This document shows, one piece after another, positions 4,372 to 52,278 of a stretch of 64,000 bases of DNA. The DNA is from Octopus sinensis (Eukaryota). The DNA lies in contig NC_042999.1 in NCBI RefSeq assembly GCF_006345805.1, positions 139,624,001 to 139,688,000 on the forward strand, written 5' to 3'. Within the stretch, counting starts at the first letter, position 1. Each line of letters opens with the position of its first letter. The translations under genes were made by a program, and so were the position numbers. The notes below the pieces were generated by a model. It did not search any database. It was not told the DNA's origin and saw nothing but the letters and a program-made list of their open reading frames with translations.

Positions 4372-5632
4372 GTATGTATATATAACTAGTGACGTAACTT
4401 CGGTATACGTACCGGAAGTACCGGATACATTTCAAGAAAGTGTTTTTTTTCATATGGGGGGGGGTAGGATTAGGGTTAAGAGTTTGTGTTAGGGTTAGGG
4501 GTGGGAGAAAAAGGTTTCTGTTATCTTGATAAATGTAAACAAAGCCATGATGAAGCTTCTTTGCTAGAGTCAACATGAGAAAATAAGTACAATATGATTT
4601 TAAACAATGCCAAGATCGACCCATATAAGTTCGATTCCAACTTCTTGGATTTACATCAAATGTGCAAATATTTTTTTTTTATTTAGCACAAAGATAATTG
4701 GATATTTTGACGATATTTCATTTTAGATGCGTTCTTTAGTTAAGGAATTCAAATTCTGAGTATTTGCATTTTAACCTAATCTTGTGATTACTGCTCGTTT
4801 AGTTTGTCAACAGATTGGAACGATTGGGTACTTTACTCATTTTGAAGTCTGAAAATACACTATATATTTTCGTGTTTCATTGAAGTACGTTGATAAAACT
4901 ATTGTTATTAATTTTTGTTTTTATAAAGTCCCTAAGGCTTCGTATTTTATTACCAGAAAGTTTGTTATAAGAAACAATTCGATTACAGAGTTTTTCTTTG
5001 CTAATATTTTAAAAAACGTATTGTGCGTAATGCCGAGTTTTTCTAGATTTTCTATGCATTATATATAATTAAGATATAGCATCACATCTATGTGAAAGAT
5101 AGTTACATGATATAAATATTATTCACTAAAGCACGGCAGGCATGATTAACCAGTCATGGCAAGTAAAAAATATGGATGACTCGGAGGAAACAAAAGAATT
5201 ATGCTATTTAAAATGTGAAAATAACACAACCACATTAAACGATTTTCGAGTATTTCATAATAGCAAAGTGAAGGAAATAAATTAAACCTACCCGAGAAGG
5301 GACAACAGTCGCTGAAATACTCGTTTTCCGTGACTCCAGGTTCGATAACTCTTCTTACTTACTGAATTAGCTTTTTCAACAAACCTCGGATAAACTTCAA
5401 TGATGATGATATCGCCGCTGAGCAAAGCTTCAAATTTCTATAAAATATTATTTAATGTTTATGGATTTGAAATTATTTATATTTAAGTAAATATTTATAT
5501 TCGAGTAAACGAAACCATGAAAATTGGGTGTAATTACGTAGTGTAATCTTTGAAAAAGCAGAAATGATATTATTAACCAGCCCTTGATGCAGACCAATAT
5601 ATCTAGTTATTTGACGCTATAAAAACCTGACG

Positions 5633-5993: not shown

Positions 5994-6449
5994 AGTGAAG
6001 GACACTTTGAATGGTGTTGTCCTTGGGTACAGTATGTCTATCCTTTGCCAAACTGTTACATTACAGGGGCATAAACACACCAGCAATGGATGTCAAGCGA
6101 TGTTGTGGGGACAAAGACACACACACATACAATGGGTTTCTTTCAGTTTCTGTCAACCAAATCCACTCACAAGGCTTTGGTCAGCCCAAGGCTATAGTAG
6201 AAGATATTTGCCCAAGGTGACACAGAGTGAAACTGAACCTACAAACATGTGGTTTAGAAGCAAGATTCTTATCACGTACTGACACCTGTGTATCCTTCAC
6301 ATAGTTCTCAGGGAGATTCAGTATGACACAGAATGCAACGAGGCTTGCCCTTTTGAATAAAGAATTTGTGGCGAAAATCTTTTCCAAGGGGGTGGGGAAA
6401 GGACTTCGGAAAATTCACAAGATCCAAGTTTTTCCCTAATTACTGTATA

Positions 6450-6451
6450 TA

Positions 6452-6514
<63 letters not shown>

Positions 6515-6886
6515 ATTTACTCTTTTAATTGTTTCAGTCATTTAACTGCAACCATGCTGAAGCACCGCCATTAGTCGAGCTAATCAACCCTGGGACTTAG
6601 TCTTTGTAAGCCTAGCACTTATTCTATCAGTCTCTTTTGCCAAACTGCTAAGTGACAGGGACATAAACACACCAGCATCGGTTGTCAAGCAAACACAGAC
6701 ACACAAACATACACACACACATATATATACATATATACAACAGGCTTCTTTCAGTTTCCGTCTACGAAATCCACTCACAAGGCTTTGGTCAGCCCGAGGC
6801 TATAGTAGAAGACACTTGCCCAAGGTGCTATGCAGTGGGATTAAACCTGGTAAGCAAGCTACTTACCACACTGCCATTCCTGCACC

Positions 6887-6976
<90 letters not shown>

Positions 6977-7348
6977 ATTTACTCTTTTAATTGTTTCAGT
7001 CATTTAACTGCAACCATGCTGAAGCACCGCCATTAGTCGAGCTAATCAACCCTGGGACTTAGTCTTTGTAAGCCTAGCACTTATTCTATCAGTCTCTTTT
7101 GCCAAACTGCTAAGTGACAGGGACATAAACACACCAGCATCGGTTGTCAAGCAAACACAGACACACAAACATACACACACACATATATATACATATATAC
7201 AACAGGCTTCTTTCAGTTTCCGTCTACGAAATCCACTCACAAGGCTTTGGTCAGCCCGAGGCTATAGTAGAAGACACTTGCCCAAGGTGCTATGCAGTGG
7301 GATTAAACCTGGTAAGCAAGCTACTTACCACACTGCCATTCCTGCACC

Positions 7349-7438
<90 letters not shown>

Positions 7439-7846
7439 ATTTACTCTTTTAATTGTTTCAGTCATTTAACTGCAACCATGCTGAAGCACCGCCATTAGTC
7501 GAGCTAATCAACCCTGGGACTTAGTCTTTGTAAGCCTAGCACTTATTCTATCAGTCTCTTTTGCCAAACTGCTAAGTGACAGGGACATAAACACACCAGC
7601 ATCGGTTGTCAAGCAAACACAGACACACAAACATACACACACACATATATATACATATATACAACAGGCTTCTTTCAGTTTCCGTCTACGAAATCCACTC
7701 ACAAGGCTTTGGTCAGCCCGAGGCTATAGTAGAAGACACTTGCCCAAGGTGCTATGCAGTGGGATTAAACCTGGTAAGCAAGCTACTTACCACACTGCCA
7801 TTCCTGCACCTATATATATGTGTGTGTGTGTGTGTGTGTATGTACA

Positions 7847-7898
<52 letters not shown>

Positions 7899-11990: not shown

Positions 11991-13370
11991 TCAAGTAAGA
12001 CCATCTGTTTTATATAAACCTGTATTTTTGACATTGGTAACTTGTGTTGATGATAATGGTAATCTGTCCCCTTCTGCTGTAAAAAGTCCTACAGGATAGA
12101 CACTTTCACTGCTACCATAAGTCACATTGTTGTCAATTAACGGAGTTGTTATTGTTTGATTTAGTGGTTTAGAAGGGTCTTCTTTTATGAGTCTAGATTG
12201 AGAACACAGTTTTTCTTCACTATATGACACAGGAGATAAGTCAGAAACTGGAGAACTTTCAAATACATTAGATTTTAATTTGGGTGATGTTCCATATATC
12301 TTATTTATTGTTGCTTTGCTATTTGTGTTATCTGAAAATGGTAAGCTAAAATCTGTAGTGGATATAGCTATAGAATTCAAAGGAGTGTTTAGCGCCTGAG
12401 AACTATCAGAAACTGAACTAGATGTGCAAGCTCTTTTATTCATTTGACCATATTTATCATCAGGTCCTACAGGCTCGATTTTTACAGTGGGAAGGATAAC
12501 TGAACCAAATGGAGAGTTGCCACTGTTAGTGTCCAGAGATGCAGCCTCAAACTCTCGCTTAACGGTTCTGACTGTACCTTCTTTAAGCTGTGCTAATTCA
12601 TTCTGGGAAATCTGCTTAATATCCTCTGTAGGAACAGTTGAAACAGAAGATGGCATCTGCCTGGTATCATCAAACGCAGTGACTGTTGAAGTAAGTAGCT
12701 GACATGCTCCACTTGTTGTTGCTTTGCTATTTGTGGTATCTGAAAATGGTAAGCTAAAATCTGTAGTGGATACAGTTATAGAATTCAAAGGAGTGTTTAG
12801 TGCCTGAGAACTATCTGAAACTGAACTAGATGTGCAAGCTCTTTTATTCATTTGACCATATTTGTCATCATCAGGTCCTACAGGCTCGATTTTTACAGTG
12901 GGAAGAATAACAGAACCAAATGGAGAGTTGCCACCGTTAGTGTCCAGAGATGCAGCCTCAAACTCTTGCTTAATGGTTCTGACTGTACCTTCTTTAAGCT
13001 GTGCTAATTCATTCTGAGAAATCTCCTGCTTAATATCCTCAGTAGGAACAGCTGAAACATCAGATGGCATCTGCCTGGTATCATCAAACGCAGTGACTGT
13101 CGAAGCAAGTTGCTGATGTGCTCCACTTTGAAGATGAGCATCACACATATTTTGTAAATCTTTCATGTCTAATTGTTTTGCAATGACTTTTAGCTGTTGT
13201 AAAATATTAAGATCAAGATCTAATAGTCCAGTATACATGTATTCAGTAAAAGCCATTAAAGTTTCTGTGCTTACTTCAGGAAATTTCACTTCATAAAACT
13301 GAGAAGAGATGCATGTACTAATTACTGAGAACAGTTTTGGAGACACAGCAGACAAGACTATTTTATGGAC
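11991..13370 (-). CDS. BTB gene 1, terminal exon (C-terminal part of BTB/POZ domain plus long S/T-rich tail)
   Basis: Acceptor tttcag|GTC CAT AAA at 13370; open for 460 codons to TGA at 11991. VHKIVLSAVSPKLF...EVSTETLMAFTEYMYTGLLDL...AKQLDMKDLQNMC matches the BTB pattern (HKxVL, Y.YTG.L, A..L.M..L...C). AATAAA on minus strand at ~11950-11955. Confidence 0.9.
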   Translation of the reverse strand, partial: VHKIVLSAVSPKLFSVISTCISSQFYEVKFPEVSTETLMAFTEYMYTGLLDLDLNILQQLKVIAKQLDMKDLQNMCDAHLQSGAHQQLASTVTAFDDTRQMPSDVSAVPTEDIKQEISQNELAQLKEGTVRTIKQEFEAASLDTNGGNSPFGSVILPTVKIEPVGPDDDKYGQMNKRACTSSSVSDSSQALNTPLNSITVSTTDFSLPFSDTTNSKATTSGACQLLTSTVTAFDDTRQMPSSVSTVPTEDIKQISQNELAQLKEGTVRTVKREFEAASLDTNSGNSPFGSVILPTVKIEPVGPDDKYGQMNKRACTSSSVSDSSQALNTPLNSIAISTTDFSLPFSDNTNSKATINKIYGTSPKLKSNVFESSPVSDLSPVSYSEEKLCSQSRLIKEDPSKPLNQTITTPLIDNNVTYGSSESVYPVGLFTAEGDRLPLSSTQVTNVKNTGLYKTDGLT

Positions 13371-13848: not shown

Positions 13849-14194
13849 CATCACAGTAGACGAGCCATTGCTAATACTGGCATCACATAATTTTCTACTT
13901 CTCCACATAGATGCTAGGTTAGACATGACAGAATGTTCATGACTAGTAACTAGCAATTTTTGTTTCGGTAAATCTGTTTTTCTAATTATTGATTTAGATA
14001 CAGTTGTTTGATTTGGATCTTTCACCAGCTTTGATTTGGATGGAGTTATTTCAAATGGTGAAGTCAACACTTGAGCTGGTTTTGTAATATTTTGCGATGC
14101 TTGTGCTAAACTTGAATCTTGCTGGACTGGCGTTTTAGTAGTTAGTTGTACACATTTTGAAATCTTTGGAGTTGGTAAAGCACTGTCCATTTGC
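13849..14194 (-). CDS. BTB gene 1, exon with linker and N-terminal half of BTB (SNLASMWRSRKLCDASISNGSSTVM)
   Basis: Acceptor ttttag|G CAA ATG (phase 2); donor ATG|gtaagt (phase 0) joins in frame to VHK of the next exon; paralogous to exons in genes 2 and 3. Confidence 0.88.
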
Positions 14195-14292: not shown

Positions 14293-14366
14293 CATCTGTC
14301 ATGTGATTGTTGATTTCTTAACCTTTGATTCTTCACGTGTTGCTCCCCAATGTGCTCTACCTTGTT
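14293..14366 (-). CDS. BTB gene 1, putative small exon (NKVEHIGEQHVKNQRLRNQQSHDRW)
   Basis: Phase 0 start, phase 2 end with donor TG|gtatgt, then a 98-bp intron. Same phases and position as the 95-bp exon and 89-bp intron in gene 2. The acceptor (aaaaaaacag) is weak. Confidence 0.5.
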
Positions 14367-15178
14367 CTGTTTTTTTATGTATCATTTTCATTTGAGTGTT
14401 GAGGAAGTGAGGCATGATCAAACAAAGAAATAAAGATTTCAGTTAAGTGGAAATAATTTGGACAGTGATGAATAAATAAATTATGTTAATGAAAATGTCA
14501 ATGATAACTAAAAATTCTTGTTTGTAAGACTAACAAATAATACTGAATTCCCATATTGAAACTTCCACTAAGGAAAAATGGAATCTGTTAGGCACATAAG
14601 TATACGGCAAATCCCAAAAGCATTAAAATCAACATGAACAGAGAATCTCTACAGAATTCTAAAACTGAAATGAGAATGGAGCTGGATGTTATACTTATCC
14701 TATTCTGAAATCTGACATGATGGTAACATGTAATTTGTCTTCAACATCAAATATATAGTAACTGCTGCCACAATTCACACAGATTTTCTATGGTAGCTTT
14801 TACCCAGAAAGGTTTTCAAAATTGTAATTCCTGACTGAATTTATAATTCATTTGACAGTAGTGTCATTACATTTGTATTTTTATCACATACATTGATTCC
14901 AAAATTATACTCAATTGACATGGATAGCGATCCCTCAACACTGTATAGTATTTAACTCATTCTTAATGAAAATTGTGGAGTGGCTACAATACTAAAAGTT
15001 TACATCACAAGAAACTTCATATCATGAGGCTTCTTAATACATTTATCCTACATGTATCTTTGGTTTCTGAAATTAACTGCAATATCAATGACCTTCCAAA
15101 CAAATTCTGGAAGCAAATGTTTGTTCTATTTCTCCTATATGTGTGTGATGCTTAAGAAGGTATACCTGATTTATCTAC

Positions 15179-15311
15179 CTTGAGAGCTGCAAGATGAGTT
15201 TTACTCCACCATTTCTGAGCTTCTAATCTTGCCTGCCTTTGTTCTGCTGTTTCTGCCAGCAAACTTTGGCTTTGGTAAGGAATCAATGGCACTAGACGTG
15301 CTAGGATTGAG
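15179..15311 (-). CDS. BTB gene 1, putative exon with one STPR-like 23-aa unit (ETAEQRQARLEAQKWWSKTHLAA)
   Basis: Acceptor ttttcag|C, open frame SILARLVPLIPYQSQSLLAETAEQRQARLEAQKWWSKTHLAALK, donor AAG|gtagat in phase 0. AETAEQ also occurs in the gene 3 N-terminus. Confidence 0.6.
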
Positions 15312-15758
15312 CTGAAAATTTACACACCTATAGAAGGTGTGGTGTAGTTACGGCCAGAGTAGGTTTTAAGTCTCTATCTCGATAACAAAGCCCGAAACGA
15401 TGCATTTTCTGCGAGCGAGTGGATGTCATACACTATTGCCTTGAGTTGTGTTCACGCAACATGTTGGATTCTATGTATGACTGTGCACGTGTTTGCACGA
15501 ATGCAACAGAAAAATGGGGCGAAAACACATTCAAATTTTGAGCTTTCTGAAAAACAAAATATGAGCATATACGTAGAAAAATTTCCTGAATCGGTTGGAG
15601 CAAGTTTGAATTCTCTAGCTTGAAAAATGCAAATTCTAGCAGTTTTGAGTGTGCCTCTTTAAGGAGTTCTCAGTTGAAAATGGTGTCAAAAAATAGCTCA
15701 AAATGAGAGAATTGTTTTGCAGACTGCTTCAAAAATCGAACGGGAAGTGTTCTTAATA

Positions 15759-16150
15759 TCTTTATATATAAAGCTGAAGTTGTCTGTGTGTGGCAGGTTT
15801 GGCAGCCTTCAACTAACACTATCTCCCCCGAGACCCTGCAGCGCAAGTTGACCAAAATTGAGAGTACGATAGAAGAAAGCTTGCTCTTCATTCCGTAGAA
15901 GATAAAATTCAAATCGGACCATGTTAAGACCAAAAATTATTTACATCAAAAAGCTGCTTTTTTTTCTATGAAAATCCCGATTTTTTATGATTTTTTTTAC
16001 TGCTGTGTCGCCATTTTTCGGTGTATTTCAACCAGAAAAATGTTCACTTAAAGAGAATAACAAGCTACATAATGCAAAATTTTTACTTTTCAAAAATTCC
16101 AATTCTAAACAATTGAAACACACCTGAGCAACGCCAGGCGATACTGCTAG
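15759..16150 (+). mobile_element. Non-autonomous Helitron, intact termini
   Basis: A|TC...CTAG|T termini; 3' hairpin cctg-agcaacgc-cagg just before CTAG; no TSD. Confidence 0.88.
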
Positions 16151-16553
16151 TTTCAATAATATGTTTTGCAAGTTAGAATAAGTAAAAATCAAATGCATGA
16201 ACAGTATGAGGGTAAGGCAAGACATCTCACATTTTCTAATTTTTCTTAGGTACTATTCTACCACATAAGCATACAAAATAATGCATAAATTCAACATTTT
16301 TGCTAGATTTCTGAAACTCTATACAACACAGAGCAGTGGGTGGAAGGACATTGTGATATTGCGCTAGCAGCAATGTAAGGAGAGTAGCGAGGCAAAAAGT
16401 GGAAGGGATGAGAGTAATGGAGAGTGGCTGGAAAGGATAGTGAATTTATGGCGTTGAATTAAATCCATAAATGTGAGGAGAGTGAAGGAGATGGGAGTGA
16501 TGGAGAGACTGACATGAGGATGGCCGGACTGTGGTGGCATTAGTGGAGTTGGC

Positions 16554-19500
16554 TTATTGCAGCGCTTCTTTGTAGACGACGTTTCTTGTTTTTGCGGATT
16601 GCCGCATATGAAGAGGTTTCGCGGATCTCCAATACGTGAGCAACCAACGTAAAGTTGACCATGAGTAAAAACATCTTGGGTCAGGTTTAGTCCAACAACT
16701 TAGAGTGATTGGCCCTGAGCTTTATTTATACTCATGCCAAAACAGACTTTTATTGGAAATTGTTTGCATGTAAACTGGAATGGACTGTCAGACGGACTTA
16801 GACTGATTGGAGTTAGCAGTTTTGTCATGCCTGCAGATGGCCCGCTTAGAATGACTGTTGTGAGAATGCGAGTGCCAATATCTTTGATGATAAGTCTCGT
16901 CCCGTTGCACAGTTCTGGTGGGTCGATGTTTCGAAGCAGCATAACTGGAGTGCCAACTTTGAGTCGGAGGTCATGAGGTGGAAGTCCAGAAATTTGTAAC
17001 GTGTTGAGGAATTCGGTGGGATAGTTGACAGCATCATCAGCGTTGTTTGTAGTGTTGATGGACTTGAATGAGTGTTCGTTCCCAGGAATATGGTTGAGGA
17101 GATTTTGATTAATGGCGTCGACATTTGCATTGTGTGGGGCTAAAATGGCTCTACCTTGCAGCCAGTTGGAATCATGAAATTGAGCTTCAAGATCAGGAAA
17201 AACTACCAAAATTAAATCATCAATACTTTCAACAAAATTTCCGAAGAGAAGACTAATATGGTCTGCATCGATTGCAGTTGCAGTTCCGTTTCCAACATCG
17301 AGTAATTGTCTGCAGAATACTTCAGTATCTGCGTCCCATTGCAAATGTACTCTCATGTTGGTGGTGAGGTGAAGTTTTTCAACATGACGCCAAAGGTAAG
17401 ACGATGTGATGCATGCTTTCACTTCATCTGCTTGTGTGCCCCCAGTGATGACAGGAAGGGTTTGCCGGAAATCTCCAGCCAAAATAACTGTTGCTCCACC
17501 CATAAGTCTTGGATTTCGACGCAAGTCCTTGAGAGCTCAATCCAAAGCCTCAGAAGCCGACTTATTGCTCATTGTTGCCTCATCCCAAATAATTAGACAG
17601 CAATCGGAAAGGAGTTTACCTCTTGGCGTGCCTCGATCTATTTCGCAAGATGGATTCTCTTTCTTTGCAATATCCAAGGGAAATTTGAAGGCTGAATGTG
17701 CTGTGCGACCCCTATGCAACAAAGTTGCAGCAATTCTGCTTGATGCAACTGCCAAAGCAATTCTCCTGTCTTTTCGCAGATTTGCGAGGAGAAGGTTGAT
17801 GGCAAAAGTTTTACCTGTGCCATCAGGTGCATCCAAAAAGAAAAGCATGCCTTCATTTGAAACGGCACTGGTGAAAATTCAGTTGTATGCAAGTTGCTGT
17901 TCAGGCAAAAGTTTTGGTTCATCTCGAGCCACCATTTCAGTCAACTCTTCAATGTTATAGTCCAATTCAGAAATGTATTCTGAATCTAAAACGCCATCTC
18001 TGTAGACAGGGCTTGGAATACCGAAATGACAAACACCATCTAATCCAGCAGCTCTGAGACGTCTGTCGATATCAAGTAGAGCCTCATAGTAGATCTCATC
18101 GTTGTATTCGCGTGCATGCAGTCTTCGCAAAATATCTTCTGACATGCTGTCTTTGTGTGCCTCCCACAGTTGGAGGGGTTCGCTGACATCGCAAAATCGT
18201 AACATACTGCAAAACAATCGCCGCCTTTGTTTTGACAGTTTACAATCAGCAGCCTCAACGCCAGGTACAGATGATTGTCGTCTTCAAGAAGTCCGTGCCT
18301 CACACACACCTCCCAGTAAGTGGGACAAATTGTGCTGTCAAACATTCTGAGGTCAGCAAATGACTTGGGTCCTCTAACTTGATGCAGTAGGGTTCTCAAG
18401 AAGAAGCACTCTTGTGCACGTGGATGAACAGTGAAAAGACGTCCGATTGCATCACTTCTCTTTACACCGGGCCAATTATCGACATCTCCATTTTTCCTTC
18501 GACTATGTGATTTCTTTGACCATGTATAGTAAACTGGTACATCGTCATAGAGAAGTGTTGCAGCAAATGCATCTCAGGAGCAAAGTTTGAAGAATGCCAT
18601 AAGTTTTGTCTCCAGCAGCTGTTGAGCGACAATTTGGGCATTCCGCTCCGTGAAATAGGTGCGCTGCCCATTCTCCAAATGAACATCAATGAACTCGTAA
18701 ATGTCAAAACCGAAAATCCTCCAAGCCGCCACATTGGAAGAAATGTATCACCCCATGACATATTGCTGGATTTCGTCATTTTGATTCATGCCACCGCTGA
18801 TGCCAATCACCACCCTTGTTGATGTATTTGGATATGTATTTGATGCTTCTGACAGAGGTGCAGCTCTCAACGTTGATGTGTGCTTTGAAGATTTTTGCGA
18901 GCAGGGGGCTGTAGGGCACAACCCAGCAGTTGTCAACGAAGTAAGTGACACCGTCTCTCCTTACCTGAACTGCAATGCCACCGAAATCAGGAGCGCGCCA
19001 CCGATAAATGGGATAGCTGTGGGTTCTGGTGCAAGCTGTGCTCACGAAGTCTTTGGGATAATGCTTGCTGCATTTGTTATTCTCCATGCATGCTTTTCTG
19101 GGGTTGAGAGGAACACAAGGTCTGTGCAAAAGATTGGTGAAAACAATGTTATGAAGCTCTGGATCAACGGTGGGATCTGGAAGCTCAGCACTGATAACTA
19201 TCAATGTCTGCAGGTCTAATTTTTTCTTTGCACCAAATAAGAATATGTGCATACGGAAGGCCCCGCTTCCGCCATTCCACAATGTACATCCAGGCATTAA
19301 GAGGACTGTAGATTTTCTCCTTCTTCAGCAAGGACATCAGGAGATTAAGCTTGAGTTTGAAGACTAATTTCATCTCAGGTCTTGAGTTCAAAAACTCTGC
19401 AGCAGTTTTTAGCTCACGGACATAAGGGTGGCTGTAGTGAAGCATTGTTTGAAGCTCTGCAATGATATTGCGACTTAAAGGAGGGTTTTTGCTGCATCTA

Positions 19501-20286
19501 TGAGAAAGTTCTTGCTCATGTCCACCCATGAAGAAAACCTGCATAAATCGTGGCTCCTCTCCTGATTGTGGGAGAAGGCTCCCAATTTTGTGGTAACATT
19601 GACCATGAATTTGGAAAGTAAAAAGCTTTTCTTTGGGCCTTGTAACAGTGGTTTGAGAAGTGCTGGCAACCTCAGTGTTGTCAGTGTTTGTCCTTGTTAT
19701 TCAGCTGTCACTCACACCAAAAGACATCATCGAAAAACATGAGTTGTATCTCTATAAACACTTTCGAAACAGCTTTCCATGGTCAGAGTCACTGGTGAGG
19801 TCCTGGATTATTTTGGGAGGAGCAGCCAGTGCCTCAAGATGAACTTTGCCCCCGGAACAGCAGAGACCTGGAGTCTCCCCTCTCCACTTTTTCGCCCCGC
19901 AGTATTTGCAGACTTGATCCATCTGTCCTATAGAAACGTCGGCTCGCGCAGTCATAAGTAGGATCGTAGTTGAAACCTACCATCAACCAAAAATTTTGTT
20001 CTGGACGATGCCGTTGTTGTCTTCAACGTTGCTGGTCCTGCAAACGAATCTTCCTGGCCTCCTAATTCTCAGTCATACGGGTGAATCGATCCCTTTCGCG
20101 CTGGGCAGAAAGACGTGATTCTCTGGCAGCAGAAGTCTCGCTTCTTCGTGATTGCCTGGTGGATTAGGAGAAGGGGCAACGCTCACATGCCTCATTACTC
20201 TCTTCGATGCATGAAAGGGTCGAACTATCATTTTGTTCAGCAACAGGAAATTCCACTGATTGCGGCGTTTCCTCAGAAGGAAGACC
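16554..20286 (-). pseudogene. Decayed autonomous Helitron RepHel (N-terminal repeats, Cys cluster, Rep, PIF1-like helicase)
   Basis: Fragments in order: GFNYDPTY; SIGQMDQVCKYCGAKKWRGETPGLCCSGGKVHL; YIVEWRKRGLPYAHILIW (Rep motif II); SAELPDPTVDPEL; VDNCWVVPYSP..HINVE..SIKYISKY (Rep motif III); FFLDAPDGTGKT (Walker A); IIWDE; LAGDFRQTLPV; LCNGTRL; MSINKAQGQSL*VVGLNL..FTHGQLYVGCSR; KTRNVVYKEALQ*. Many stops and frameshifts. Confidence 0.93.
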
Positions 20287-20842
20287 CTGTAGAGACGGAT
20301 AGCATCATTCAAAATGGTATAGCTAATGATTATATGGTAAAGCCAATGTAATAGTAGTAGATTGTATTTTTGGATAGTCAAGTCTGGTATACTTCTTAAA
20401 TTAAAAAAAAAAAAAACAGAAAAATCAAGTCATAATTCGAACAAATTGTGCAATTAATTTTTTTTGATAAAGAATAAAATGTGTGACTTATAAGTAATAA
20501 TTATTTTTAGATCGACAGGAATACATTCACTGCCATGGCTTTAATGTTATGTATTAAAAAGTATAATTAAACGAAAATAAAGCAATGGCAAAATTAATGT
20601 GTTAAGTTTTAGCAATCACCTAGTATGTGTTCAATACCAAGATAAGCTGCAAATATTATGGATATTTGGTAGGCAGTCCAACAAACAGTTATTTTACTAA
20701 ACAAATTGTCCAAGAAAACGTCGTAAATATTGACACAAACTCGATTTTTCATGAATGTTTAACAGATTTGAATAATTAAGTTCTGATGTAAACATTGCAG
20801 CCGCTGTTTTTATGGCAATAATAGATTAGATGGTAGAAATAG

Positions 20843-21235
20843 GGATCTTTTCGGTTTGAACGGCAGTTTTTTAAAATAATTTCCACGTAACTAAACACTT
20901 TTAAACTTCGTATACTGGTAGAATGTGTTTATAAAACATCTTTTTCTCTTGGCTTTATTGAGAAAATTCTATAGTTTGTAAGATATTTGTTTTGTTTTTT
21001 TTTTCAATTTCTGCAATTTCAACCAATCGATGACGTCTATTCTGTGCCGTATGAATATGTCCCTCGTTTAAACAACAGATTGGGTTTATTTACATTTGTG
21101 AAGAAAACAAGATACCGCCCCCACCCTAACCCTAAAACAGATTGAAATGCAATAGATCGATACTAGGGTCATAATTATGGGTGACAATTGCATATGACAC
21201 CGCTAGAAAAACTGCCATTCAAACCAAAAAGACCC
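20843..21235. mobile_element. MITE with GG-starting TIRs and 8-bp TSD (Merlin-like by inference)
   Basis: TIR ggatcttttcggtttgaacggcagtttt / aaaactgccattcaaaccaaaaagaccc; TSD AGAAATAG at 20835-20842 and 21236-21243. Confidence 0.8.
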
Positions 21236-21748
21236 AGAAATAGTAATGAATTGTATGTATAAAAATGTCTGGGTAATATTGTAAGTCAATGGAGATATCA
21301 CATTTGCACATTTTAGGTTACTTGTAAATGGGCCGTTTCATTTTAAATATTATGATTATGAAAATATGCTGAATAGAAGAGTTTAAATGAAAAAAAAAAC
21401 GAACCACAACATTGAGACAGAAGCTTTGGCTTGGAATGGGTTCACTTGGCCCTAGGATTTTCTCCAAAAGGAGGTTTTGTTGTTGAATAGCAAGAGAAGT
21501 AGCCTAATTGGGAAAGAGTAAACAAAAAGACTACATCAGGGAAGGTATATAAAGTTTACACTGATGTATGGAAATAGCATTAAAACAAAAAGTCCAATTT
21601 ACAACATTGAATGAAAATGAATAGATCAGAGAAATTCCTTAGATTCAAATGGTCAGCCAGGTTTCAAGTTTTAAATAACGGAACGGAAAAAGAGCAAGTT
21701 CAGCAATATTTCAACGAAAAAATGTAATATTTAGGCAAAAAAACGTAC

Positions 21749-21829
21749 CTGTGCACGGGCCTTCCTTCTTTGCATTTTACGGGTTCTATTTCGCTTATCA
21801 GAAAGATTTGAGCGTTTTCGGTTTGGCAT
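21749..21829 (-). CDS. Putative first coding exon MPNRKRSNLSDKRNRTRKMQRRKARAQ (Helitron RepHel-type N-terminus)
   Basis: ATG at 21829, 27 open codons, donor CAG|gtacgt in phase 0. Joins in frame to acceptor ctctacag|GGT at 20286, where the RepHel frame begins. CpG-rich stretch upstream at ~22180-22330. Confidence 0.6.
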
Positions 21830-22337
21830 ATCGTAAAATATACTACAAAAGAGTGACAAAAGGTTCTTAATTATATTTAAATCAATGATTTATAGCACCT
21901 GTCTGATAAATTTCACTATGTCAATCGATGAACAGCCATTAGACAATATCATGCATCTCATGTTAAGTCCTGAAGCGTGCGAAGATGCTTATATGGTGTA
22001 AAAAATCGAATTTTAGATTAAAATGGGAGTTTAAAAAGAGCAAAAATACAAACAAAAAGTCTGCGTGAGCAAAGCACCTATCAAGAGAACAGAATGTACT
22101 CGAATGAAACGTTGGCAGAAGAGTGTCACAGCAAGTAATAAATCGAAAATTATTTACTTTGCGTTTTATTTACTTCGTTCACCAACATGTATCGTGCACG
22201 TGCGATACAAACATGTATCGCGAATCTATTCATTTGCATACGCGCAAGTCGTTGTAGGATCTACTACTTATGACTAGCTAGCGCGGATGCGCGACTGCGC
22301 GCAGCACCGGGACCGCTGTTCGCTTCGCTAGTAGTAC

Positions 22338-22985
22338 CAAATACACTACGTTAGTTTCGTGTTTCATTGAAGCACGTTGATAAATTATTATTAATTTTTG
22401 TTTTTATAAAGTCCCTAAGGCTTCGTATTTTATTCCCAGAAAGTTTGTTATAAGAAACAATTCGATTACAGAGTTTTTCTTTGCTAATATTTTAAAAAAC
22501 GTATTGTGCGTAATGCCGAGTTTTTCTAGATTTTCTATGCAGTATATATAATTAAGATATAGCATCACATCTATGTAGAAGATAGTTACATGATATAAAT
22601 ATTATTCACTAAAGCACGGCAGGCATGATTAACCAGTTATGGCAAGTAAAAAATATGGATGACTCGGAGGAAACAAAAGAATTATGCTATTTAAGATGTG
22701 AAAATAATAGAACCACATTAAACGATTTTCGAGTATTTCATAATAGCAAAGTGAAGGAAATAAATTAAACCTACCCGAGAAGGGACAACAGTCGCTGAAA
22801 TATTCGTTTTCAGAGACTCCAAGTTCGATAACTCTTCTTACTTATTGAATTAGCTTTTTCAACTAGCCTCGGATAAACATCAATGATGATGATATCTCGG
22901 CTGAGCAAAGCTTCAAATTTCAGTAAAATATTATTTAACGTCAATGGATTTGAAATTATTTATATTTAAGTAAATATTTATACTC
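22338..22985. repeat. ~650-bp dispersed repeat, near-identical to 4853-5505
   Basis: Colinear sequence from aaatacacta to taaatatttata in both places. Confidence 0.85.
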
Positions 22986-35131: not shown

Positions 35132-35536
35132 AAACATTCTTTGCTGATTTCTAGCGTTCTCATTCCTGGTCATCTGTTTCCTTCTCATCTTCCTCTTTTG
35201 GTCTTTAGCCAGCAAACCCTGCCCTTCGTCAGTAAGTCGTGCCAGCTTTTTTCTGGCGAATCTTAGCCTATTCTTGACCAGTAGTTCCTTTCTCTCTTCA
35301 TCAGTCATCGCCTTCCTCCTTTTCGCCATTCTTAGCCTTTCCTTGTCTCGTACCTCCTGTCTTTTTTCAACAGACATCGCCTGTCTTATTCTGGCAATTC
35401 TTTGCCTTTCCTTGGCTAATCGCTCTGTCCTTTCTTCAGGAGACATCGCTTGCTTTTTCTTGGCCCTTCGTTGTCTATCTTTCGTTCTCTCCTGCTCTCT
35501 CTCCTCGGCAGACATCTCATGTCTTTTTCTGCTCAT
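35132..35536 (-). CDS. Putative first coding exon of BTB gene 2: four to five tandem 23-aa charged repeats
   Basis: MSAEEREQERTKDRQRRAKKKQA / MSPEERTERLAKERQRIARIRQA / MSVEKRQEVRDKERLRMAKRRKA / MTDEERKELLVKNRLRFARKKLA. ATG at 35536; consensus donor TTT|gtaagt in phase 0, matching the phase-0 acceptor at 29754. Confidence 0.65.
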
Positions 35537-36624
35537 CTTGTCCAAATATTTAGCGTGTACCTCCACTTTGAATGTGGGTGATAAATTTTTATATACTTCT
35601 TTTTTTATTTTATTTTACTAGTGTCTGCCTTTACCGATGTCAAATCTTTTACAACAAATGTAATTTATACTCTCAAGGACTTGACTTGTTATTGTAACAA
35701 TCTAACGGTGCAGAGCTATTCGCTTGATCCACTAAAAAACTTTTCCGCATTTTTCACTGTTAAAAGTCTACAGTAGATTATTACAGAAAACAGTTTTGTT
35801 CTCTTATTACATCAGCCGGTAATACCAATCTCTTTTAAATTTCCTTCAAATCACATCCTACCTTCTTAAATAAGGAAAGGATGCTTTATATTAAGTAAAC
35901 CTATTATAAGCCTATACTTCTTAAAAGATGGAACGATCCTTACCCTGAATGTTTCAGATCATAGACCTCCTGGTCATAGTTGACTTGGGACTGAACGACA
36001 ATCATTAAAAAAAAAAGAAAAAAGAATTTGTAGGGTTACATTTCGAGATATTATCCTATTGCTGACCAACTGTTAACCTTTCTTTTTACGATCTATTTCA
36101 GGTCAATTTCGTTGCTTACTATCAACACTTTGCTGAGTTGGTGAGATGCGTGAAAAAAACAAACTCACCTTTCCACACTTTCAGAATAAAACAATCTTGG
36201 TAAATTCATATTTTAATTAGTAGTACCGTAGTACTTAGTTATATAATAAATATTTTAACAGTTGCCACTTTGGCGATCCTTCAGTATAAGTACACACGTG
36301 ACTTTGTTTACATTTCTGAAGATAACAGAACCCCCCCCCCCATATATAAAAAAAAACACTACTTACACCGGTACTTATACCGAAGTTACGCCCTTTTATT
36401 TATTATTTACTTTTTAGCCTGGAAAATATTCTAAATCGGAACTTTAAATTCCTGCGGCCGCCCACGATGATTTCACGACTTCAAATGACATTCAGATTAT
36501 TTACACTTTAGCTCTTACTTCAAATATGTGAATTATCTACCTCTCTCCGTAGAATGGCCATATTCGAAACTTTAGAATTCGTGTTTTCTTTATGAAAAAC
36601 AAACTTACTTCGCACATCATGAAC

Positions 36625-36769
36625 GAAAGGCTAAGAATGGCGAAAAGGAGGAAGGCGATGACTGATGAAGAGAGAAAGGAACTACTGGTCAAGAATAGGC
36701 TAAGATTCGCCAGAAAAAAGCTGGCACGACTTACTGACGAAAGGCAGGGTTTGCTGGCTAAAGACCAAA
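36625..36769 (+). repeat. 145-bp inverted copy of gene 2 exon sequence (35197-35341) with 8-bp flanking direct repeat
   Basis: One mismatch against the reverse complement of 35197-35341; TCATGAAC at 36617-36624 and 36770-36777. Confidence 0.9.
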
Positions 36770-37264: not shown

Positions 37265-40200
37265 ATGGCTACTGGTCACTACGAGGCTAAGGCGCAAGTC
37301 AAGCGTGACGCCAAAACAAAAAAGCAGGATTCCCTGTCACCATGCGCTGAACTTGACAGTTTGAACGCTACTAACACCACCATCAGCATCGACAACAGCA
37401 ACAACTACATAACAAAGGTCGCAAGGCCAAGCACCGTCACCGCCACCAATGATTCCACCATCAACACCGACACCACCACCATGGCAGCTTCTGCTACCTC
37501 TGCTAACGATACCACTAACAACAACAACAAAACCAAGGTCGCAAGGCCAATCCCTGTCACCGCAACCAATGATTCTACCAACACCGACACCCTCCTTGAC
37601 AACGCTTACGACGTTGAGTTCCCCATACTGCTTTCACCACAATTTCATAAAGCAGGGGAAATGGGGAAAAACAACACGAACACAGATGTGAGCATGAACG
37701 CTAACATCGCGACCTCCACTCAAAAACTGGTAAACAACCCTACTTCACAGTTATCTACTACTACGAACGACTCTGCCACAAACATCACCACCACCACCAC
37801 CTCCACAAAAAACAATTTCGTGGAAGCCATACGACCGAAAAGAAGAATCCTAAAATTTACTCACCAACAAATACAAGACACAAAGTCCTTGCTCACCAAA
37901 GAAGGTGACACAATGCATTTAAATATTCCATAGAAGAAACACAAAAGAAGACCATCATTTACAGAATACTCAACACCAAAACAAAAAGACCAGAAAGCCT
38001 ACTTAAAGGAAAAATTGAAAAGTGCCTCTCTTCCGTGTGGAAATTCCGAAATTATGTGAATTGGGGAAGTAAATTTGCTACCGTGCAAGTTCGCTTTCAT
38101 ACGGAAGAACTAGCAAAAAAGTTTTCAACCCTTACTCTGCGCACAGGCCAGGTAACAATGGTTACGAAAGTTACGCAGAGTTACGAAAGTTACAATATAC
38201 AATGTGCCGCCAGTAGTGAATACCTAGTGGCTGGTATCGGCCATCTGCTTCGATATAGAAGAAGCAGATATTTTAGAAATAGCTGATATTCCATAGGAAA
38301 GCTGGACTGGTAAAAAAACTCGAAATATTGCTTCAAATCTCCCAAGAAGCAATAAACAATTTACCAACCAGTGTTCAACTGGCAAAAGGTCAAAAATTGT
38401 ATGTAGTGGTGGAGGACAGGAGGCCAAGATGCTATTTATGCAACAGTGAGGCACACCTTAGATATGAGTGCCCAACTGCTGTCAGAAATAGGCAACAGCA
38501 ACCACTCCCCAAACCTGGAAGGAGACCCGTGCTACCCACACCACCTTCAACCCAAAAGACAGGAAAAACAGCGGACGATACAAAAACTGTTTCCCCCTCA
38601 CCAACCACATCACCAAGAAGAGAATTACCTCCGACATCACAACCAACAAAAGAAACAACATCACCACCAACATCAGAAGACAGACCAACACCAGCACCAA
38701 GAACAACAACCAAAAAAACAAATAACAATGACGAAAAGACAAATTCTGCCCCTAATACCCCAACAACACAAACAGCACACAAAACAACAACACCTTCTAC
38801 AAACACACATATAGATCCAAACGCTTTGCCTTTACCCCCTTCTGATTCGTCGTCCAACGACGAAAGTTCGACGGAATGGCAAATAGCCACAGGGGGTAAA
38901 AGGAAAAGACCAAAAAAGCCCACCAAACAAGTAAGTAAAGCAGGGAGATATTTAACTTCGGACAGCATCCCCTTAGACAATGAAAAAAAATCAATCACCC
39001 CGCAAAACCACACACACAACTAACAGCAATAGACACGGACAATAAAAAACTAATGGATTACATTGCATCCAACACGAACATCTGCGAAGATGACTTTAAG
39101 ACAATCATCCACGCACCACTCCACCGAAACACATAAGAATTGTACACATAACACAAACACAACACCATACACTGAAAACCATATTTCAAAATGCGGTTGG
39201 GGGGTTTCAAAAATACCTCTCAAAAAAACTATTCAAACACCTCCGCAAAGACACTACAAAAGATGAAGAAAAAACTGAAACTTTCGAAATGAGTAAGTCA
39301 CCTTCCCTCTTGCCTCTTGTCTCTTCCAGTGTAGTGTGTGAAACACAAATTTCTTAAACGTCAATTATGCTTAAATTAGGTTGTGTGAATGCGCGTGGCT
39401 TGGCATCGGCTTGGAAACAAGGTTACCTTCTAAACAACATCAAGTCACTGAACGTGGATATGGTAGCTATCAGTGAAACCAGACTCAGCAAGCCGCGGGT
39501 CCTCGCGTGCATGTTTGGCGACCAATTTGACATTTATTTTTCTCCCTGTCTGCCGAACATGGGTGGTGGAGGTACCGTGGTGCTTTTTCGAAAGAATCTA
39601 AATGTAAAAGTAAGAACAATATTCCTAGGTTGGTTGTCTTGGACGTGGATGGCAGAAATGTGTGTGCATTCTGTCTGATGGCAGTTTATGCACCGTCCTT
39701 AACGGGTCGGGCGGATTTCTTCAGACGTCTAGAGGTTTTCCTGGGTACGTCTAGACCTTTACTGTTAGTGGGGGATTGGAACGCTACCTTGGACACGCAT
39801 ATAGATTATGTGGGAATGGATAGGAATAGAAGGGGGTGTAAGTGCCTCAAAGACCTACTCAGACGTTTCCATTTGTCTGACAGGTTCCGACTCCACCATC
39901 CGAACGTGGACTTGGACAAACCGTGTCGGATCGTCGAGATCTTATCTAGATAGAATTCTATGCAGGACAGCGGATAGGGATAGTGTAGGATGTCCACAAT
40001 TTAAAATAGTCAGCTACACAGATCACAAATTTGTGACGTGTACGCTCGACTTAGATAAGACACATAGACAGGGTCCCGGTTACTGGAAATTGAACACGTC
40101 GCTCTTAGCGCGACAGGTTTACAAGAACCGGATTAGCGAGCTAATTAAGAGGGCGCTGGCGGGAGCCGTCGTTAACAACCGCTGGTGGTTCGCCCTGAAA

Positions 40201-42859
40201 ATGGCAATAAAATCGGAATCAATTAGGTTTAGCAAGGAATTAGCGATAGATCGAAATAGAGTAGAGGGAGACCTGGTTAAGAAACTAGAAGAGGCACTTA
40301 CCACTGGCAGCACAACCAACGTGCTGGCTGCGAGGATGGCCCTCGACCAATACCTCAACGCCAAGCACGAAGGTTGTGTCGTCAGAGCTAAAATGCGTGC
40401 CTTAAGGAACGAAGCTGTGCGAGAGGCCCGGGTAGCGGAGGCGCAGCGTGGCAACAGAGCCACCATTCGGTCTCTAATAGATCAACAGGGATGCAGTTTA
40501 CTCGAACCCGAAAGGATGTGTGAGGCCTTTCAACAGCACTTTGCTCGACTGTTTTGTGCGAGTGGTGGGTCGGAACGCGGGATGGATTTCAGTGCCTACC
40601 TGACCGACCTGCCGCGGCTCTCGGCAAAAGAAGCGGAGTGTTGTGAAAGTCCCATCACAGCCGCTGACGTGCGGGCTGCGCGAGTGATAAGTCGCCTGGA
40701 TTGGATGGTTTACCCTACGAGCTGTATTGTCAAATGCCAGACTTGTTTGGCGACCTCTTGGCATCAGTCTACTGCAACTGGCAACAAAACGAGAGAATCC
40801 CTGGTTTCGTGAGCCGAGGTGCAGTGACGTTGCTGAAGAAAGACCCAAACAAGGGGAATTTTATAGATAATTTCAGGCCCATCACTCTGCTCAACGCAGA
40901 TTTGAAAAAGTAATAGCCGAGAGGTTGGCGCTTGTCATTGGTAAACTGGTCGACAGGGCGCAAACATGCACCGTGCCGGGCAGAACCATACATGACAATC
41001 TCCATCTGATGCGCTACATTGTGGACAGGGTAGTTAAGGATTCTGACATGGGTGGGGCGCTGATCAATTTGGATCAGTCTAAAGCCTTCGATAGGGTCGA
41101 CCATCGGTACTTGGCGGCTGGCTTCGGTCCCGTCTTCCGCGGTTGGATCGCTGCCTTGTATAGCGGCATCCGATCGGTGATTCGGGCGAACGGCCACCTG
41201 TCGAAACCGTTTGACATCACGCGTTCGGTCCGTCAGGGGTGTCCCCTGTCGGCGCTTCTGTATGTATTGACTCTCGAGCCGCTACTGCGGAAGCTGGCGA
41301 CACTGAGGGGCATCCCATGGGAACTGGGTTGCGGGACGAGCGTGTCGGCATATGCGGACGATGTCACCGTCATACTGTCGAGCGAAAAACACATCCAGAT
41401 GATAGGCGAGACACTAAGAAAATACGAAACGGTGACGGGAGCGAGGATTAACCCGGAAAAGTCAGTGGGTTTGCTACTCGGCACCTAGAGAAGCAAGCCC
41501 ATGCCGTCCGACTGCGGCTCAGTAGTGGGACGCTGGACGGACGGACCGGTTAAATTGCTCGGGGTCTGGTTCAGTCCGAACCTCCAAATGGATAAGAACT
41601 GGAACGAGATCACGAGTAGAGTGGTCGCTCTCAGCCAAACATGGGCCGAGAGAAAGCTGTCTCTAAAAGGTCAGGCGGAGGTGGCGAACGCGTACATCGC
41701 ATCCGTCATCGATTACCGCCTGACCGTCGTGCCTTGTCCCGGCGCCACCATCACCAAACTGGAACGCATACTCTTCCGCTTCCTGTGGAAGGGTGGGGTT
41801 CCAATGGTGAGGAGGTCCATTTGCTGTCAATATCCGTTGAATGGAGGACTGGGCATGCCGTGGTTGATGATGCGCTGAGACTGCGACATCTCTGGAACTT
41901 CATCGATGACGGTGAACAGGTGTGGGCGCCGTTTGTGAGGCGCGCCTTCCCGTAGCACGTCTCACTGACCGAAGTGCAAACGTGGATCAAGAAGAGACCG
42001 AAACTGGGCGATTGGCACCAAGAGTGTCGCCAAGCTCTACAGCAGCTCTGCCGACCGGGGTCAAACTTGTGCAACTTACAAACGACTAAAGCGTTCTATA
42101 GAGGACTAGTGGAGGGGAGGTCCGACGACACACTCGGGGCAAATCTGGTCGTCGACGAGAAATTCCTAACCCGCCTGTTCAGGACGACGTTCGGGCCGGG
42201 GCTTATGGATAACTTCCAGAAATCCCTGGCTTGGCAATGCTATCGAGACGCACTACCTGTTCGAGAGAAGAGCTACAGGCACGGTTCGAAAACCATCACC
42301 GGACCATCCTGCCCGAGATGCAGTCAGAGCGATGAAACCGTTCTGCACGCACTCGTGCAGTGTCCAGATATTTCAGAGCTGTGGACCTTTGTCGAACAGC
42401 TGTTGTCGCGTGTAGGACGGGCCCGCTTATCGGCCGAGTCTATCGTGAATATTGTTCCACCACCTTCCTTTAAACGGGAAGGGAAAACGGTTTTCGTTAC
42501 CCTGATGGCTATGGCGAAAGAATGTGTGTGGTGGACGCGTTTGAAAGGACTGCAAACAAACACCTTCCTCTGGTTAGTCTCTCGTCAACTTTTTCAAGTA
42601 CCACTTGAAAAGGAGGATGAGAATAGAGAGGAAGGCTTTGTCGAACGAATGTTTTAATAAAAAGTGGGTAAAAGTGGCAAAAATGGTCAGTATGAAAGAC
42701 GACACTATTTTAAGCGTAAATCTGTAACCAAAACAGACAACGAGAGGTAAGGTGACTTACTCGTGTTCATTTTCGAACTGTCTGAGGTGACCTTGGTCTT
42801 TTTTGTAGGTTTTTCTTTCCAGGGCTACACCTAACTGTGAACTTTATATATATATATAT

Positions 42860-52031: not shown

Positions 52032-52278
52032 CTGAAACAAAGTAAATGATAAAACATGCTAATAACTTAACTTAAATCAAGGAGTAAGTCTTTATTTCTT
52101 GTTTTTCTCCCCCAAAATATTCAATTCCAAACAGGAAAGCAATTGTCTCTAATGAAAGATTAGTAAAATTCAAAAGTTATTTTGATCTGTGTATCTTTAT
52201 TAGCAATTTGAAAAAAATTATATCAATATGATGTACAGGTAACTTTAAAAATCTTAAGAAACTGTTTGATAAATATTA

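Follow-up and report, generated by a model that had tools for sequence, protein, structure and literature searches.

Introduction

Transposase DNA-binding domains borrowed by host genes are a recognised source of new transcription factors, and in Drosophila mod(mdg4) and lola a BTB core is combined with many alternative heads or tails derived from transposable elements (TEs). Cosby et al. are said to have described, in 2021, host-transposase fusion genes that arose by splicing capture of transposase DNA-binding domains. To our knowledge, the intermediate stage, in which the gene is still joined to its donor transposon, is seldom encountered, and the documented cases are cut-and-paste transposases. 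In this study, we analyzed a window of 64,000 nucleotides of Octopus sinensis (contig NC_042999.1, positions 139,624,001 to 139,688,000), whose minus strand carries a tandem cluster of BTB-domain genes (genes 1, 2, and 3), and in which a decayed Helitron lies in the 5' part of gene 1. Based on sequence comparisons and gene models, this Helitron is probably a trap that supplies gene 1, whose own Helitron-type head it destroyed, with a promoter, a first exon, and a splice donor. As in mod(mdg4) and lola, a BTB core is combined with variable DNA-binding exons; in contrast, the octopus genes vary chiefly from one tandem paralog to the next and in their N-terminal part.

The closest known case is HelibatN3 in vespertilionid bats (Grabundzija et al. 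2016; Thomas et al. 2014), which captured the NUBPL promoter, six codons, and a splice donor that trap downstream exons (PMC4778049; PMC4224331). Similar to HelibatN3, the octopus Helitron has the same orientation as the gene and places a presumed promoter, N-terminal codons, and a donor upstream of the next host acceptors, where HelibatN3 gives rise to chimeric transcripts and the octopus element to chimeric gene models. In contrast, HelibatN3 is a non-autonomous Helitron carrying captured host sequence, whereas the octopus exons are the 5' exons of the Helitron's own RepHel gene. Moreover, the HelibatN3 products are mostly N-terminally truncated or have novel 5' untranslated regions, while the annotated product here is an in-frame fusion. 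The HelibatN3 transcripts were shown experimentally, whereas the octopus fusion is known here from gene models.

PMC12062965 cites the concept of host-transposase fusion and reports BTB/POZ proteins with TE-derived domains as the largest class. Similar to these, a multicopy host domain (BTB) in the octopus cluster would gain a transposon-derived N-terminal or DNA-binding part by splicing of transposon exons to host exons, but the source is the N-terminus of a Helitron RepHel protein, comprising a leader and STPR repeats, instead of a cut-and-paste transposase. In gene 1 itself, only the leader and the second Helitron exon are fused, without the STPR repeats. The literature searched contained no Helitron-derived host fusion and no paper on this locus or on a cephalopod Helitron-BTB fusion.

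Organization of the Helitron within gene 1

The features of the Helitron and of gene 1 are given below in window positions.

15301-22338, minus strand: lineage-specific block, consisting of the decayed autonomous Helitron and two small nested repeats, delimited by cross-species and paralog alignments
22274-22338, minus strand: piece resembling a Helitron 3' end (GC-rich hairpin, 7 nt, CTAGCTAG), abutting the TC at 22273-22272, from sequence and fold
21830-22273, minus strand: Helitron 5' leader and presumed promoter, inside the inserted block and upstream of the Helitron ATG
21749-21829, minus strand: Helitron exon 1 (coding part), 81 nt, MPNRKRSNLSDKRNRTRKMQRRKARAQ, ATG at 21829, donor CAG/gtacgt
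21405-21503, minus strand: Helitron exon 2, 99 nt, phase 0, ATSLAIQQQNLLLEKILGPSEPIPSQSFCLNVV, bounded by aattag/GCT and GTG/gttcgt
20839-21235, no strand assigned: nested repeat of ~400 bp in Helitron intron 2, from self-BLAST
16554-20286, minus strand: Helitron exon 3, the decayed RepHel open reading frame (ORF), stop codon at 16556-16554
15301-16553, minus strand: Helitron 3' region with a nested repeat (15756-16151), a 7-bp hairpin (cacacct/aggtgtg), and CTAG (15304-15301)
15179-15300, minus strand: relic of the ancestral STPR module exon of gene 1, ending LLAETAEQRQARLEAQKWWSKTHLAALK/gt, found by tblastn with paralog and ortholog N-termini and by DNA alignments
14293-14366, minus strand: exon 3 of gene 1 (LOC115209898), 74 nt, NKVEHIGEQHVKNQRLRNQQSHDRW, remnant of ancestral exon 2
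13849-14194, minus strand: exon A of gene 1, start of the BTB domain, with an internal in-frame ATG at 14190
11991-13370, minus strand: exon B of gene 1, remaining BTB domain (Pfam), long tail, and stop codon

The RepHel gene consists of three phase-0 exons that join in frame, separated by introns of 245 bp (exons 1-2) and 1,118 bp (exons 2-3). Exon 3 opens at the acceptor ctctacag/GGT (first base 20286) in phase 0 with the RepHel frame, which has a stop seven codons upstream of this point and no ATG of its own. The exon contains two STPR repeats (20139-20002), a zinc-finger-like motif (~19990-19850), the Rep domain, and a Pif1-like helicase (18256-16607), and Pfam recognizes Helitron_like_N (8.2e-09), PIF1 (3.7e-59), and Pif1_2B (7.2e-19). 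The best database relatives are animal Helitron proteins, with 44-60% identity between the window RepHel and the intact ones. Additionally, the zinc-finger-like motif before Rep, IGQMDQVCKYCGAKKWRGETPGLCCSGGKV, aligns with the same motif of insect and octopus Helitron proteins. The frame is interrupted by 7 stops where it aligns with an intact Helitron protein, by 3 further stops in its N-terminal part, and by at least 4 frameshifts, and ~260 aa of the Rep region (about residues 155-415) are deleted. The element is a decayed autonomous Helitron with the RepHel protein and the zinc-finger-like motif of canonical Helitrons (HLE1). In contrast to exon 3, the two small exons have remained intact, as have their splice donors, the ATG, and the Helitron 5' region.

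A preliminary description of this DNA had placed a decayed autonomous Helitron directly upstream of gene 1, with an 81-bp exon (21829-21749) joined in phase 0 to position 20286. The Helitron, the exon, and the join are all found, and the element in fact lies within the 5' part of the gene. The RepHel peptides quoted there with three in-frame stops read as described, and the claimed difference between an open first exon and a stop-riddled RepHel holds, with at least 10 stops in exon 3. As for the single 1,462-bp intron from 21749 to 20286, its splice sites stand, but the intron is not single: exon 2 (21503-21405) lies inside it.

Helitron exons in the gene models of gene 1

The NCBI model of gene 1, XP_036357295.1 (LOC115209898; P0135), starts at the Helitron ATG and uses Helitron exons 1 and 2. 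Its N-terminus reads MPNRKRSNLSDKRNRTRKMQRRKARAQ, ATSLAIQQQ...CLNVV, NKVEHIGEQHVKNQRLRNQQSHDRW, and QMDSALPT..., and these pieces map at 100% to 21829-21749, 21503-21405, 14366-14293, and 14194 onward. The annotated route therefore runs from 21749 to 21503, from 21405 to 14366, and then to 14194, skipping the dead RepHel. The coding sequence formed by exon 1, exon 2, 14366-14293, 14194-13849, and 13370-11991 is an intact ORF of 659 aa with canonical splice sites, and the chimeric start is in frame because the 74-nt exon (14366-14293) is included. Without this exon, the Helitron ATG is out of frame and meets a stop after 79 aa, which explains the odd start of the Octopus vulgaris model (P0138). 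That model begins MLWQ/MDSAL, with an ATG 8 nt before the donor at 21405 that is joined directly to exon A. The O. vulgaris annotation was built from Iso-Seq and RNA-seq with PASA/EVM (PMC10700109), and its 8-nt initial coding exon, 7.2 kb upstream, was presumably derived from assembled transcripts. The arrangement is that of an exon trap: a transposon start, a coding exon, and a donor lie upstream of host acceptors, in the same orientation and with an open frame.

At its 3' end, XP_036357295.1 leaves exon B after '...KYGQM' and ends in exon B of a paralog, skipping LOC115209899. This spans 10001-55808 of locus L001 (O. sinensis GCA_006345805.1, CM016861.1; positions 1-31829 equal window 31829-1 at 100%). 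The jump is probably a mis-join of near-identical paralogs.

The suggestion that gene 1 may use the Helitron first exon thus agrees with XP_036357295.1, and the O. vulgaris model also uses the donor at 21405. The statement that gene 1 has no other visible start exon is half right: the intact start exon of the N-terminal module is missing, with only the relic at 15300-15179 left, but exon A has an in-frame ATG at 14190, immediately 3' of its acceptor. The preliminary description had further proposed a cryptic route through exon 1 and 20286-20187, with a splice from GCAT/gtgagc near 20190 (at 20187) to an acceptor near 15300. This route would keep one STPR repeat of the relic exon. Its assembled coding sequence indeed has an open frame that reaches the normal stop, gagc follows the donor GT, and at the end of the relic exon there is a good donor in phase 0. 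However, neither annotation uses this route or its acceptor, and the conserved Helitron exon 2 would be skipped. Furthermore, the presumed acceptor cctag/CA is the right-hand edge of the block, a Helitron-style CTAG, with no pyrimidine tract beyond 'tcaatcc'. As the main isoform of gene 1, this route is very improbable.

Exons 1 and 2 as the N-terminus of the RepHel protein

Compared with other Helitrons, the 81-bp exon reads as the genuine N-terminus of the RepHel protein, with the leader MPxRKRSNLS. A search with the N-terminal 220 residues returned a second octopus copy, XP_036357300.1 (P0160), a 140-aa NCBI model 40 kb off in the same cluster. P0160 begins MPMRKRSNLSNHRARMRKLRKRKAHAR and continues into the Helitron zinc-finger motif. 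It has an 81-nt exon 1 with the donor at the identical codon, a 96-nt exon 2, and an exon 3 starting just before AFNYDP. The two copies of exon 1 are 67% identical at the DNA level, and the introns do not align. At the protein level, 24 of 44 N-terminal residues are identical (BLASTP, E 9e-10); for exon 2, BLASTP aligns the first ~17 residues, and the rest was matched by eye.

Similarly, insect Helitron proteins begin MPRPRRSNLSRQ... at Met1, and the insect Helitron fragments from the N-terminal search start MPRPRRSNLSRQS... The leader MP(P/R)x(R/K)Rxx(I/L)(G/S)R followed by charged repeats occurs in half of 30 full-length animal Helitron proteins. A hidden Markov model (HMM) of the 22-aa leader gives window exon 1 a score of 8.0 bits, which 3 of 500 shuffles reach. 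The score of exons 1 and 2 with a 45-aa Helitron-leader HMM, 2.9 bits, is not significant; exon 1 is no longer than 27 aa, and the STPR repeats are encoded in exon 3. The basic residues of exon 1 appear to be arranged like a bipartite nuclear localisation signal, and Helraiser has an N-terminal nuclear localisation signal together with a DNA-binding N-terminal domain (PMC4778049).

Exon 1 is identical in O. vulgaris. Across the Helitron exons, the two species differ by 0 substitutions and one in-frame indel, too little for a selection test. At the O. vulgaris locus (L002), exon 2 contains 18 extra bases in frame, encoding the six codons AFAEHS. This is probably an in-frame deletion in O. sinensis, because the second Helitron copy reads EPA there too.

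The STPR module shared by the Helitron and the BTB genes

The BTB paralogs start with a module exon of 71-72 aa (MRTKRSSLGRLT...ETPEQRQARLEAQKQR...LK), followed by a short exon (IKMTQEKKNK...) and exon A. With an HMM built from 15 non-octopus Helitron leaders, the BTB module exons score 27-33 bits, which none of 300 shuffles per set reaches (the shuffle maxima are ~5 bits in most sets and 15.5 in one). Among 3,582 background ORFs from the window and the loci, only the BTB module exons and one Helitron leader exceed 15 bits. The 22-aa leader HMM gives these exons 15-18 bits (0 of 500 shuffles). Moreover, when the 105-aa leader of gene 3 was compared with 1.84 billion representative proteins, Helitron N-termini were among the best non-self matches. 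The top Helitron match is 47% identical over residues 1-105, starting from Met1, and further matches include a cuttlefish Helitron protein and other sequences with Helitron_like_N.

The STPR-defining register, with Glu1, Thr/Ser2, and Arg9 in 23 residues, is known from the FMBP-1 structure paper (PMC4856987), and STPR is a stable extra domain of canonical Helitrons (HELIANO, PMC11417382). Similar to the STPR of Bombyx FMBP-1 and human ZNF821 (PF21107; PMC4856987), the octopus modules are tandem basic-rich repeats of exactly 23 residues. The Pfam family STPRs (PF21107) is the top match of four BTB modules. In contrast to the reference STPR, however, their scores (17.4, 18.1, 25.8, and 17.8 bits) fall below the Pfam cut-off of 27, and their DNA binding is predicted. 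Gene 2, the decayed Helitron exon 3, and the leader of a third Helitron in the cluster gave no match to PF21107. Gene 3, the exons of P0140 and paralogs, the relic exon, and two repeats within Helitron exon 3 all show the register of 23 residues with Glu1, Thr/Ser2, and Arg9, and the gene 3 module has a tandem DNA period of 69 bp. The gene 2 repeats keep the 23-residue period, with Met at position 1. This period is the only link of the gene 2 module to STPR, as it matches neither the leader HMM nor the Pfam STPR, and we do not claim a Helitron origin for it. Collectively, the HMM, protein search, Pfam, and register results indicate that the module suspected earlier to be common to the Helitron and the BTB genes is indeed shared and is an STPR repeat.

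The sharing itself could have arisen in reverse, with the leader and module being host BTB sequence that a Helitron captured. The module is present in Helitron and BTB genes alike, and Helitrons do capture host exons and promoters (PMC4778049). However, the MPxRRSN(I/L)(G/S)R leader with STPR stands at Met1 of insect, crustacean, rotifer, and cuttlefish RepHel proteins, none of which has a BTB domain, and the canonical status of STPR in Helitrons also speaks against capture. In addition, the heads of the BTB family vary in other cephalopods. We consider a reverse transfer extremely improbable, even more so than the cryptic splice route.

The ancestral module exon and the age of the Helitron event

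The 5' two-thirds of the relic exon at 15300-15179, including the start codon, are gone, and both gene models skip the relic. The 5' part of the ancestral exon 2 of gene 1 contains stops and a frameshift. The positional ortholog of gene 1 in Octopus bimaculoides, LOC106877737 (locus L003), shares the derived 'gtagataaatcagg' signature with gene 1, and its locus keeps the old module exon. No Helitron-like sequence was found at L003. The homology with O. bimaculoides ends at 22339/22338 and resumes within the old module exon at ~15300-15256, and the paralogous copy at 4630-5502 behaves likewise. Between these breakpoints, O. bimaculoides has 5.1 kb of other sequence, including a THAP-like exon. 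In contrast to O. bimaculoides, O. vulgaris has the block, colinear and with 99.2% identity. Based on the divergence times in PMC10700109, the Helitron event would date to 2.5-34 million years (My) ago, which is compatible with the O. vulgaris Helitron burst at ~25 My (PMC13282606).

The preliminary description had regarded this Helitron as a possible donor of the module of the BTB family. We rejected this candidate: an older module relic lies downstream of the element and the O. bimaculoides ortholog has the exon without the Helitron; therefore, the Helitron in the window is not the module donor. For the same reason of an older relic downstream, the locus does not record the founding repeat-BTB fusion, as had been suggested, but a later repeat of the capture process.

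As a separate observation, the O. bimaculoides model of the gene 1 ortholog includes an additional 89-aa exon at the N-terminus (MSPKKTRKYCSICRHY...; L003 10001-10267), which is absent from the window. By eye, this exon resembles a THAP zinc finger; the precomputed Pfam entry lists BTB only. Other O. bimaculoides paralogs have isoforms with THAP, FLYWCH, or CENP-B/Tc5 helix-turn-helix domains, and, more generally, DNA-binding heads of transposon origin appear to accumulate in this cluster.

Ends of the block and nested repeats

The left junction of the block reads ...gtattt/GGTACTACTAGCG, followed by the GC-rich hairpin, 7 nt, CTAGCTAG, and the TC at 22273-22272. The hairpin in 22274-22338 folds at -16.3 kcal/mol with RNA parameters. 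Canonical Helitrons have 5'-TC and CTRR-3' termini, with a hairpin ~10-12 nt ahead of the 3' end. The junction of 22274-22338 with 22273 has the appearance of Helitrons joined head to tail or of a truncated copy further upstream, and the Helitron 5' leader would begin with TC if 22273 is the true 5' end. Promoter activity of this leader (21830-22273) is predicted from its position. On the right, the block ends in CTAG (15304-15301), 22 nt past the 7-bp hairpin. The two candidate Helitron 3' ends, near 22274 and 15301, are unrelated in sequence. Neither the 65-bp piece with hairpin and CTAG nor 22338-21830 has a second copy in the window, the rest of L001, L003, or L004.

The nested repeat at 20839-21235 has further copies at 59277-59680 and at 47.0-47.7 kb, as shown by self-BLAST. 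No tRNA or Rfam matches were found in 15000-22600, and the nested repeats are therefore not recognisable tRNA-derived short interspersed nuclear elements. In addition, a short plus-strand fragment at 61892-62041 encodes the last 50 residues of a Helitron helicase (51% identity to P0002). The repeats around this fragment are also present at 15756-16151, 3' of the main RepHel, where the relative orientation is opposite.

Other Helitrons in the cluster

The next two paralogs downstream of gene 1 are likewise preceded by Helitron fragments of the same orientation. Unit B of the cluster carries the second Helitron copy, whose exons NCBI models as the separate 140-aa gene described above. A third fragment, of a different family, lies at L001 34023-35506, just past window position 1. 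The fragment has a leader without introns (MPRRKTSSIGCKTAKAARTS...), with alanine-rich repeats and a zinc finger, and the next BTB paralog follows it, in the same orientation, at a distance of 2.7 kb. The leader of this fragment resembles the gene 3 leader (local alignment z = 6.5, 0 of 300 shuffles). Units A and B were also considered as one segmental duplication, which fits poorly, as the Helitron parts diverge more than the flanks. Duplication, independent insertion, and gene conversion are all candidates for the history of the two units.

Proposed splicing capture and competing explanations

We propose that the block replaced the old upstream region of gene 1 together with the first two-thirds of its old first coding exon, a Helitron-type STPR module. 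Transcription would start from the Helitron 5' region and run through the dead RepHel, and the exon-2 donor (21405/gt) would be spliced to 14366 and 14194, bypassing the Helitron acceptor at 20286. When the 74-nt exon is included, the Helitron ATG would head the 659-aa protein, composed of the Helitron leader and the BTB protein; when it is skipped, translation would start from the ATG in Helitron exon 2 or from 14190. The actual transcripts, like nuclear import by the leader and DNA binding by STPR, are predicted from the sequences and models.

Several observations weigh against this proposal. The Helitron start comes from two computational annotations. These are not fully independent, since the O. 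vulgaris pipeline also used cephalopod protein alignments, and XP_036357295.1 is probably wrong at its 3' end, where it moves to a different paralog ~36 kb away. The pyrimidine tract of the acceptor before 14366 is poor, and GTG/gttcgt is a weak donor for exon 2. At neither junction is the Helitron terminus canonical: the flanks (...GTATTT/GG and CTAG/CACG) lack the A/T target into which canonical Helitrons insert without a target site duplication. The ~5 kb of ancestral sequence missing between the breakpoints implies that the event was not a simple insertion, and with ~5.1 kb replaced relative to O. bimaculoides, the Helitron junctions are probably secondary. In units A and B, the Helitron parts are 67-83% identical (differing by 17-33%), whereas the flanks and the BTB gene are 86-92% identical (differing by 8-14%). 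Finally, the BTB exons of gene 1 have a ratio of nonsynonymous to synonymous substitution rates (dN/dS) of 0.59-0.71 against the O. bimaculoides ortholog, indicating weak constraint, and the chimeric product has no full STPR domain. The fusion may thus reflect a decaying paralog rather than an innovation.

The dependence on gene models raises the question of an annotation artefact, in which gene 1 starts near exon A (14190) and the Helitron exons, silent or part of a separate transcript, were chained on by their fitting phases. The in-frame ATG of exon A and the demonstrably chimeric 3' end of XP_036357295.1 are in line with such an error. So are the separate modelling of the Helitron exons in unit B and the O. 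vulgaris model of the neighbouring paralog gene 1' (P0137), which has no Helitron exons. However, two pipelines in two species chose the same donor at 21405, 7.2 kb upstream, and a pipeline would hardly arrive at an initial coding exon of 8 nt if it had no transcript to follow. Moreover, the good acceptors at which exon A and exon 3 open imply that an exon precedes them. Of the native first exon, a truncated part is left, and gene 1 has a frameshift in the alternative start that gene 1' uses. An artefact is unlikely in our judgment.

The weak constraint bears on a different explanation, in which the chimeric transcript is real and gene 1 is nevertheless a paralog in decay, with the fusion a neutral by-product after the Helitron destroyed the STPR exon. 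A dN/dS of 0.6-0.7 against the O. bimaculoides ortholog, the loss of the STPR repeats from the chimeric protein, the stops and the frameshift in the 5' part of ancestral exon 2, and the numerous near-identical BTB paralogs close to gene 1 all point in this direction. On the other hand, the ORFs of exons A and B (1.7 kb) are intact in both species, as is the 659-aa chimeric ORF, and O. sinensis and O. vulgaris differ in their Helitron exons by a single indel, of 18 bp, which keeps the frame. There is also some synonymous excess, with 39 changes in exon B against 27 expected. Neutral decay is a more serious contender than an artefact, although we still regard it as rather doubtful, and the trapping of gene 1 by the Helitron as promoter, first exon, and donor stays the probable reading.

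The BTB genes and other elements in the window

Exon B of each of the three genes contains a BTB domain (PF00651; gene 1, 8e-10; gene 2, 2.5e-09; gene 3, 2.4e-08 in Pfam). The remaining genes of the cluster in the window are the following.

35536-35123, minus strand: module exon of gene 2, followed by a mini-exon, an exon A that begins at ~29572, and an exon B spanning 28287-27310
57381-56932, minus strand: first exon of gene 3, with exon B at 52033-51078

Within exon B of gene 1, 12305-13128 (minus strand) is an in-frame tandem duplication of ~410 bp, 93.5% identical, that doubles a tail segment of ~136 aa; the O. bimaculoides ortholog (P0136) likewise has two copies of this segment. Part of the gene 2 module exon (35197-35344, minus strand) has a 148-bp inverted copy at 36622-36769 (plus strand), 98.6% identical and 1.3 kb upstream.

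In the intron of gene 3, 52278-56483 (plus strand) resembles a long-terminal-repeat retrotransposon, with a GC content of 0.46-0.52, as judged from BLAST self-hits and ORF listings. Its direct repeats (52278-52585 and 56193-56483) are 85.7% identical and flank plus-strand ORFs that resemble gag, protease, reverse transcriptase, and integrase. Between gene 2 and gene 3, two plus-strand ORF sets (39358-42654 and 44846-46468) resemble non-LTR retrotransposons, each with an endonuclease-like N-terminus and a reverse-transcriptase-like body; their mutual similarity is weak (70-76%). Additionally, a 462-bp unit forms a tandem array of ~3 copies at 6444-7881, with 97-98% identity, each copy ending in a TA/CA microsatellite.

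Implications for the BTB family

At this locus, a Helitron with its own introns still lies between its first exons and the BTB exons annotated as their splice partners, and the neighbouring paralogs carry what look like older, tidied-up heads of the Helitron type, with a leader and STPR repeats. Since the modules of the paralogs are STPR repeats behind a Helitron leader, the DNA-binding heads of the family were most likely acquired earlier by the same process. Extending this to the cluster as a whole, we tentatively suggest, at somewhat less than even chances, that it consists of BTB-STPR transcription factors that arose by repeated splicing capture of RepHel 5' exons. At least two leader types, MRTKRSSLGRLT... 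and MPPKKRVRIGRRT..., would then come from different Helitron families, and gene 1 would be a young third event (2.5-34 My) with the Helitron still in place.

For annotation, the cluster presents problems of its own, with a RefSeq model that jumps 36 kb between paralogs and Helitron exons modelled as a separate gene. If transcripts confirm the fusion, the locus would offer a testable mechanism for the gain and exchange of DNA-binding heads in a cephalopod-specific BTB family. If true, Helitrons would join the transposons that donate protein domains to host genes, beyond promoters.

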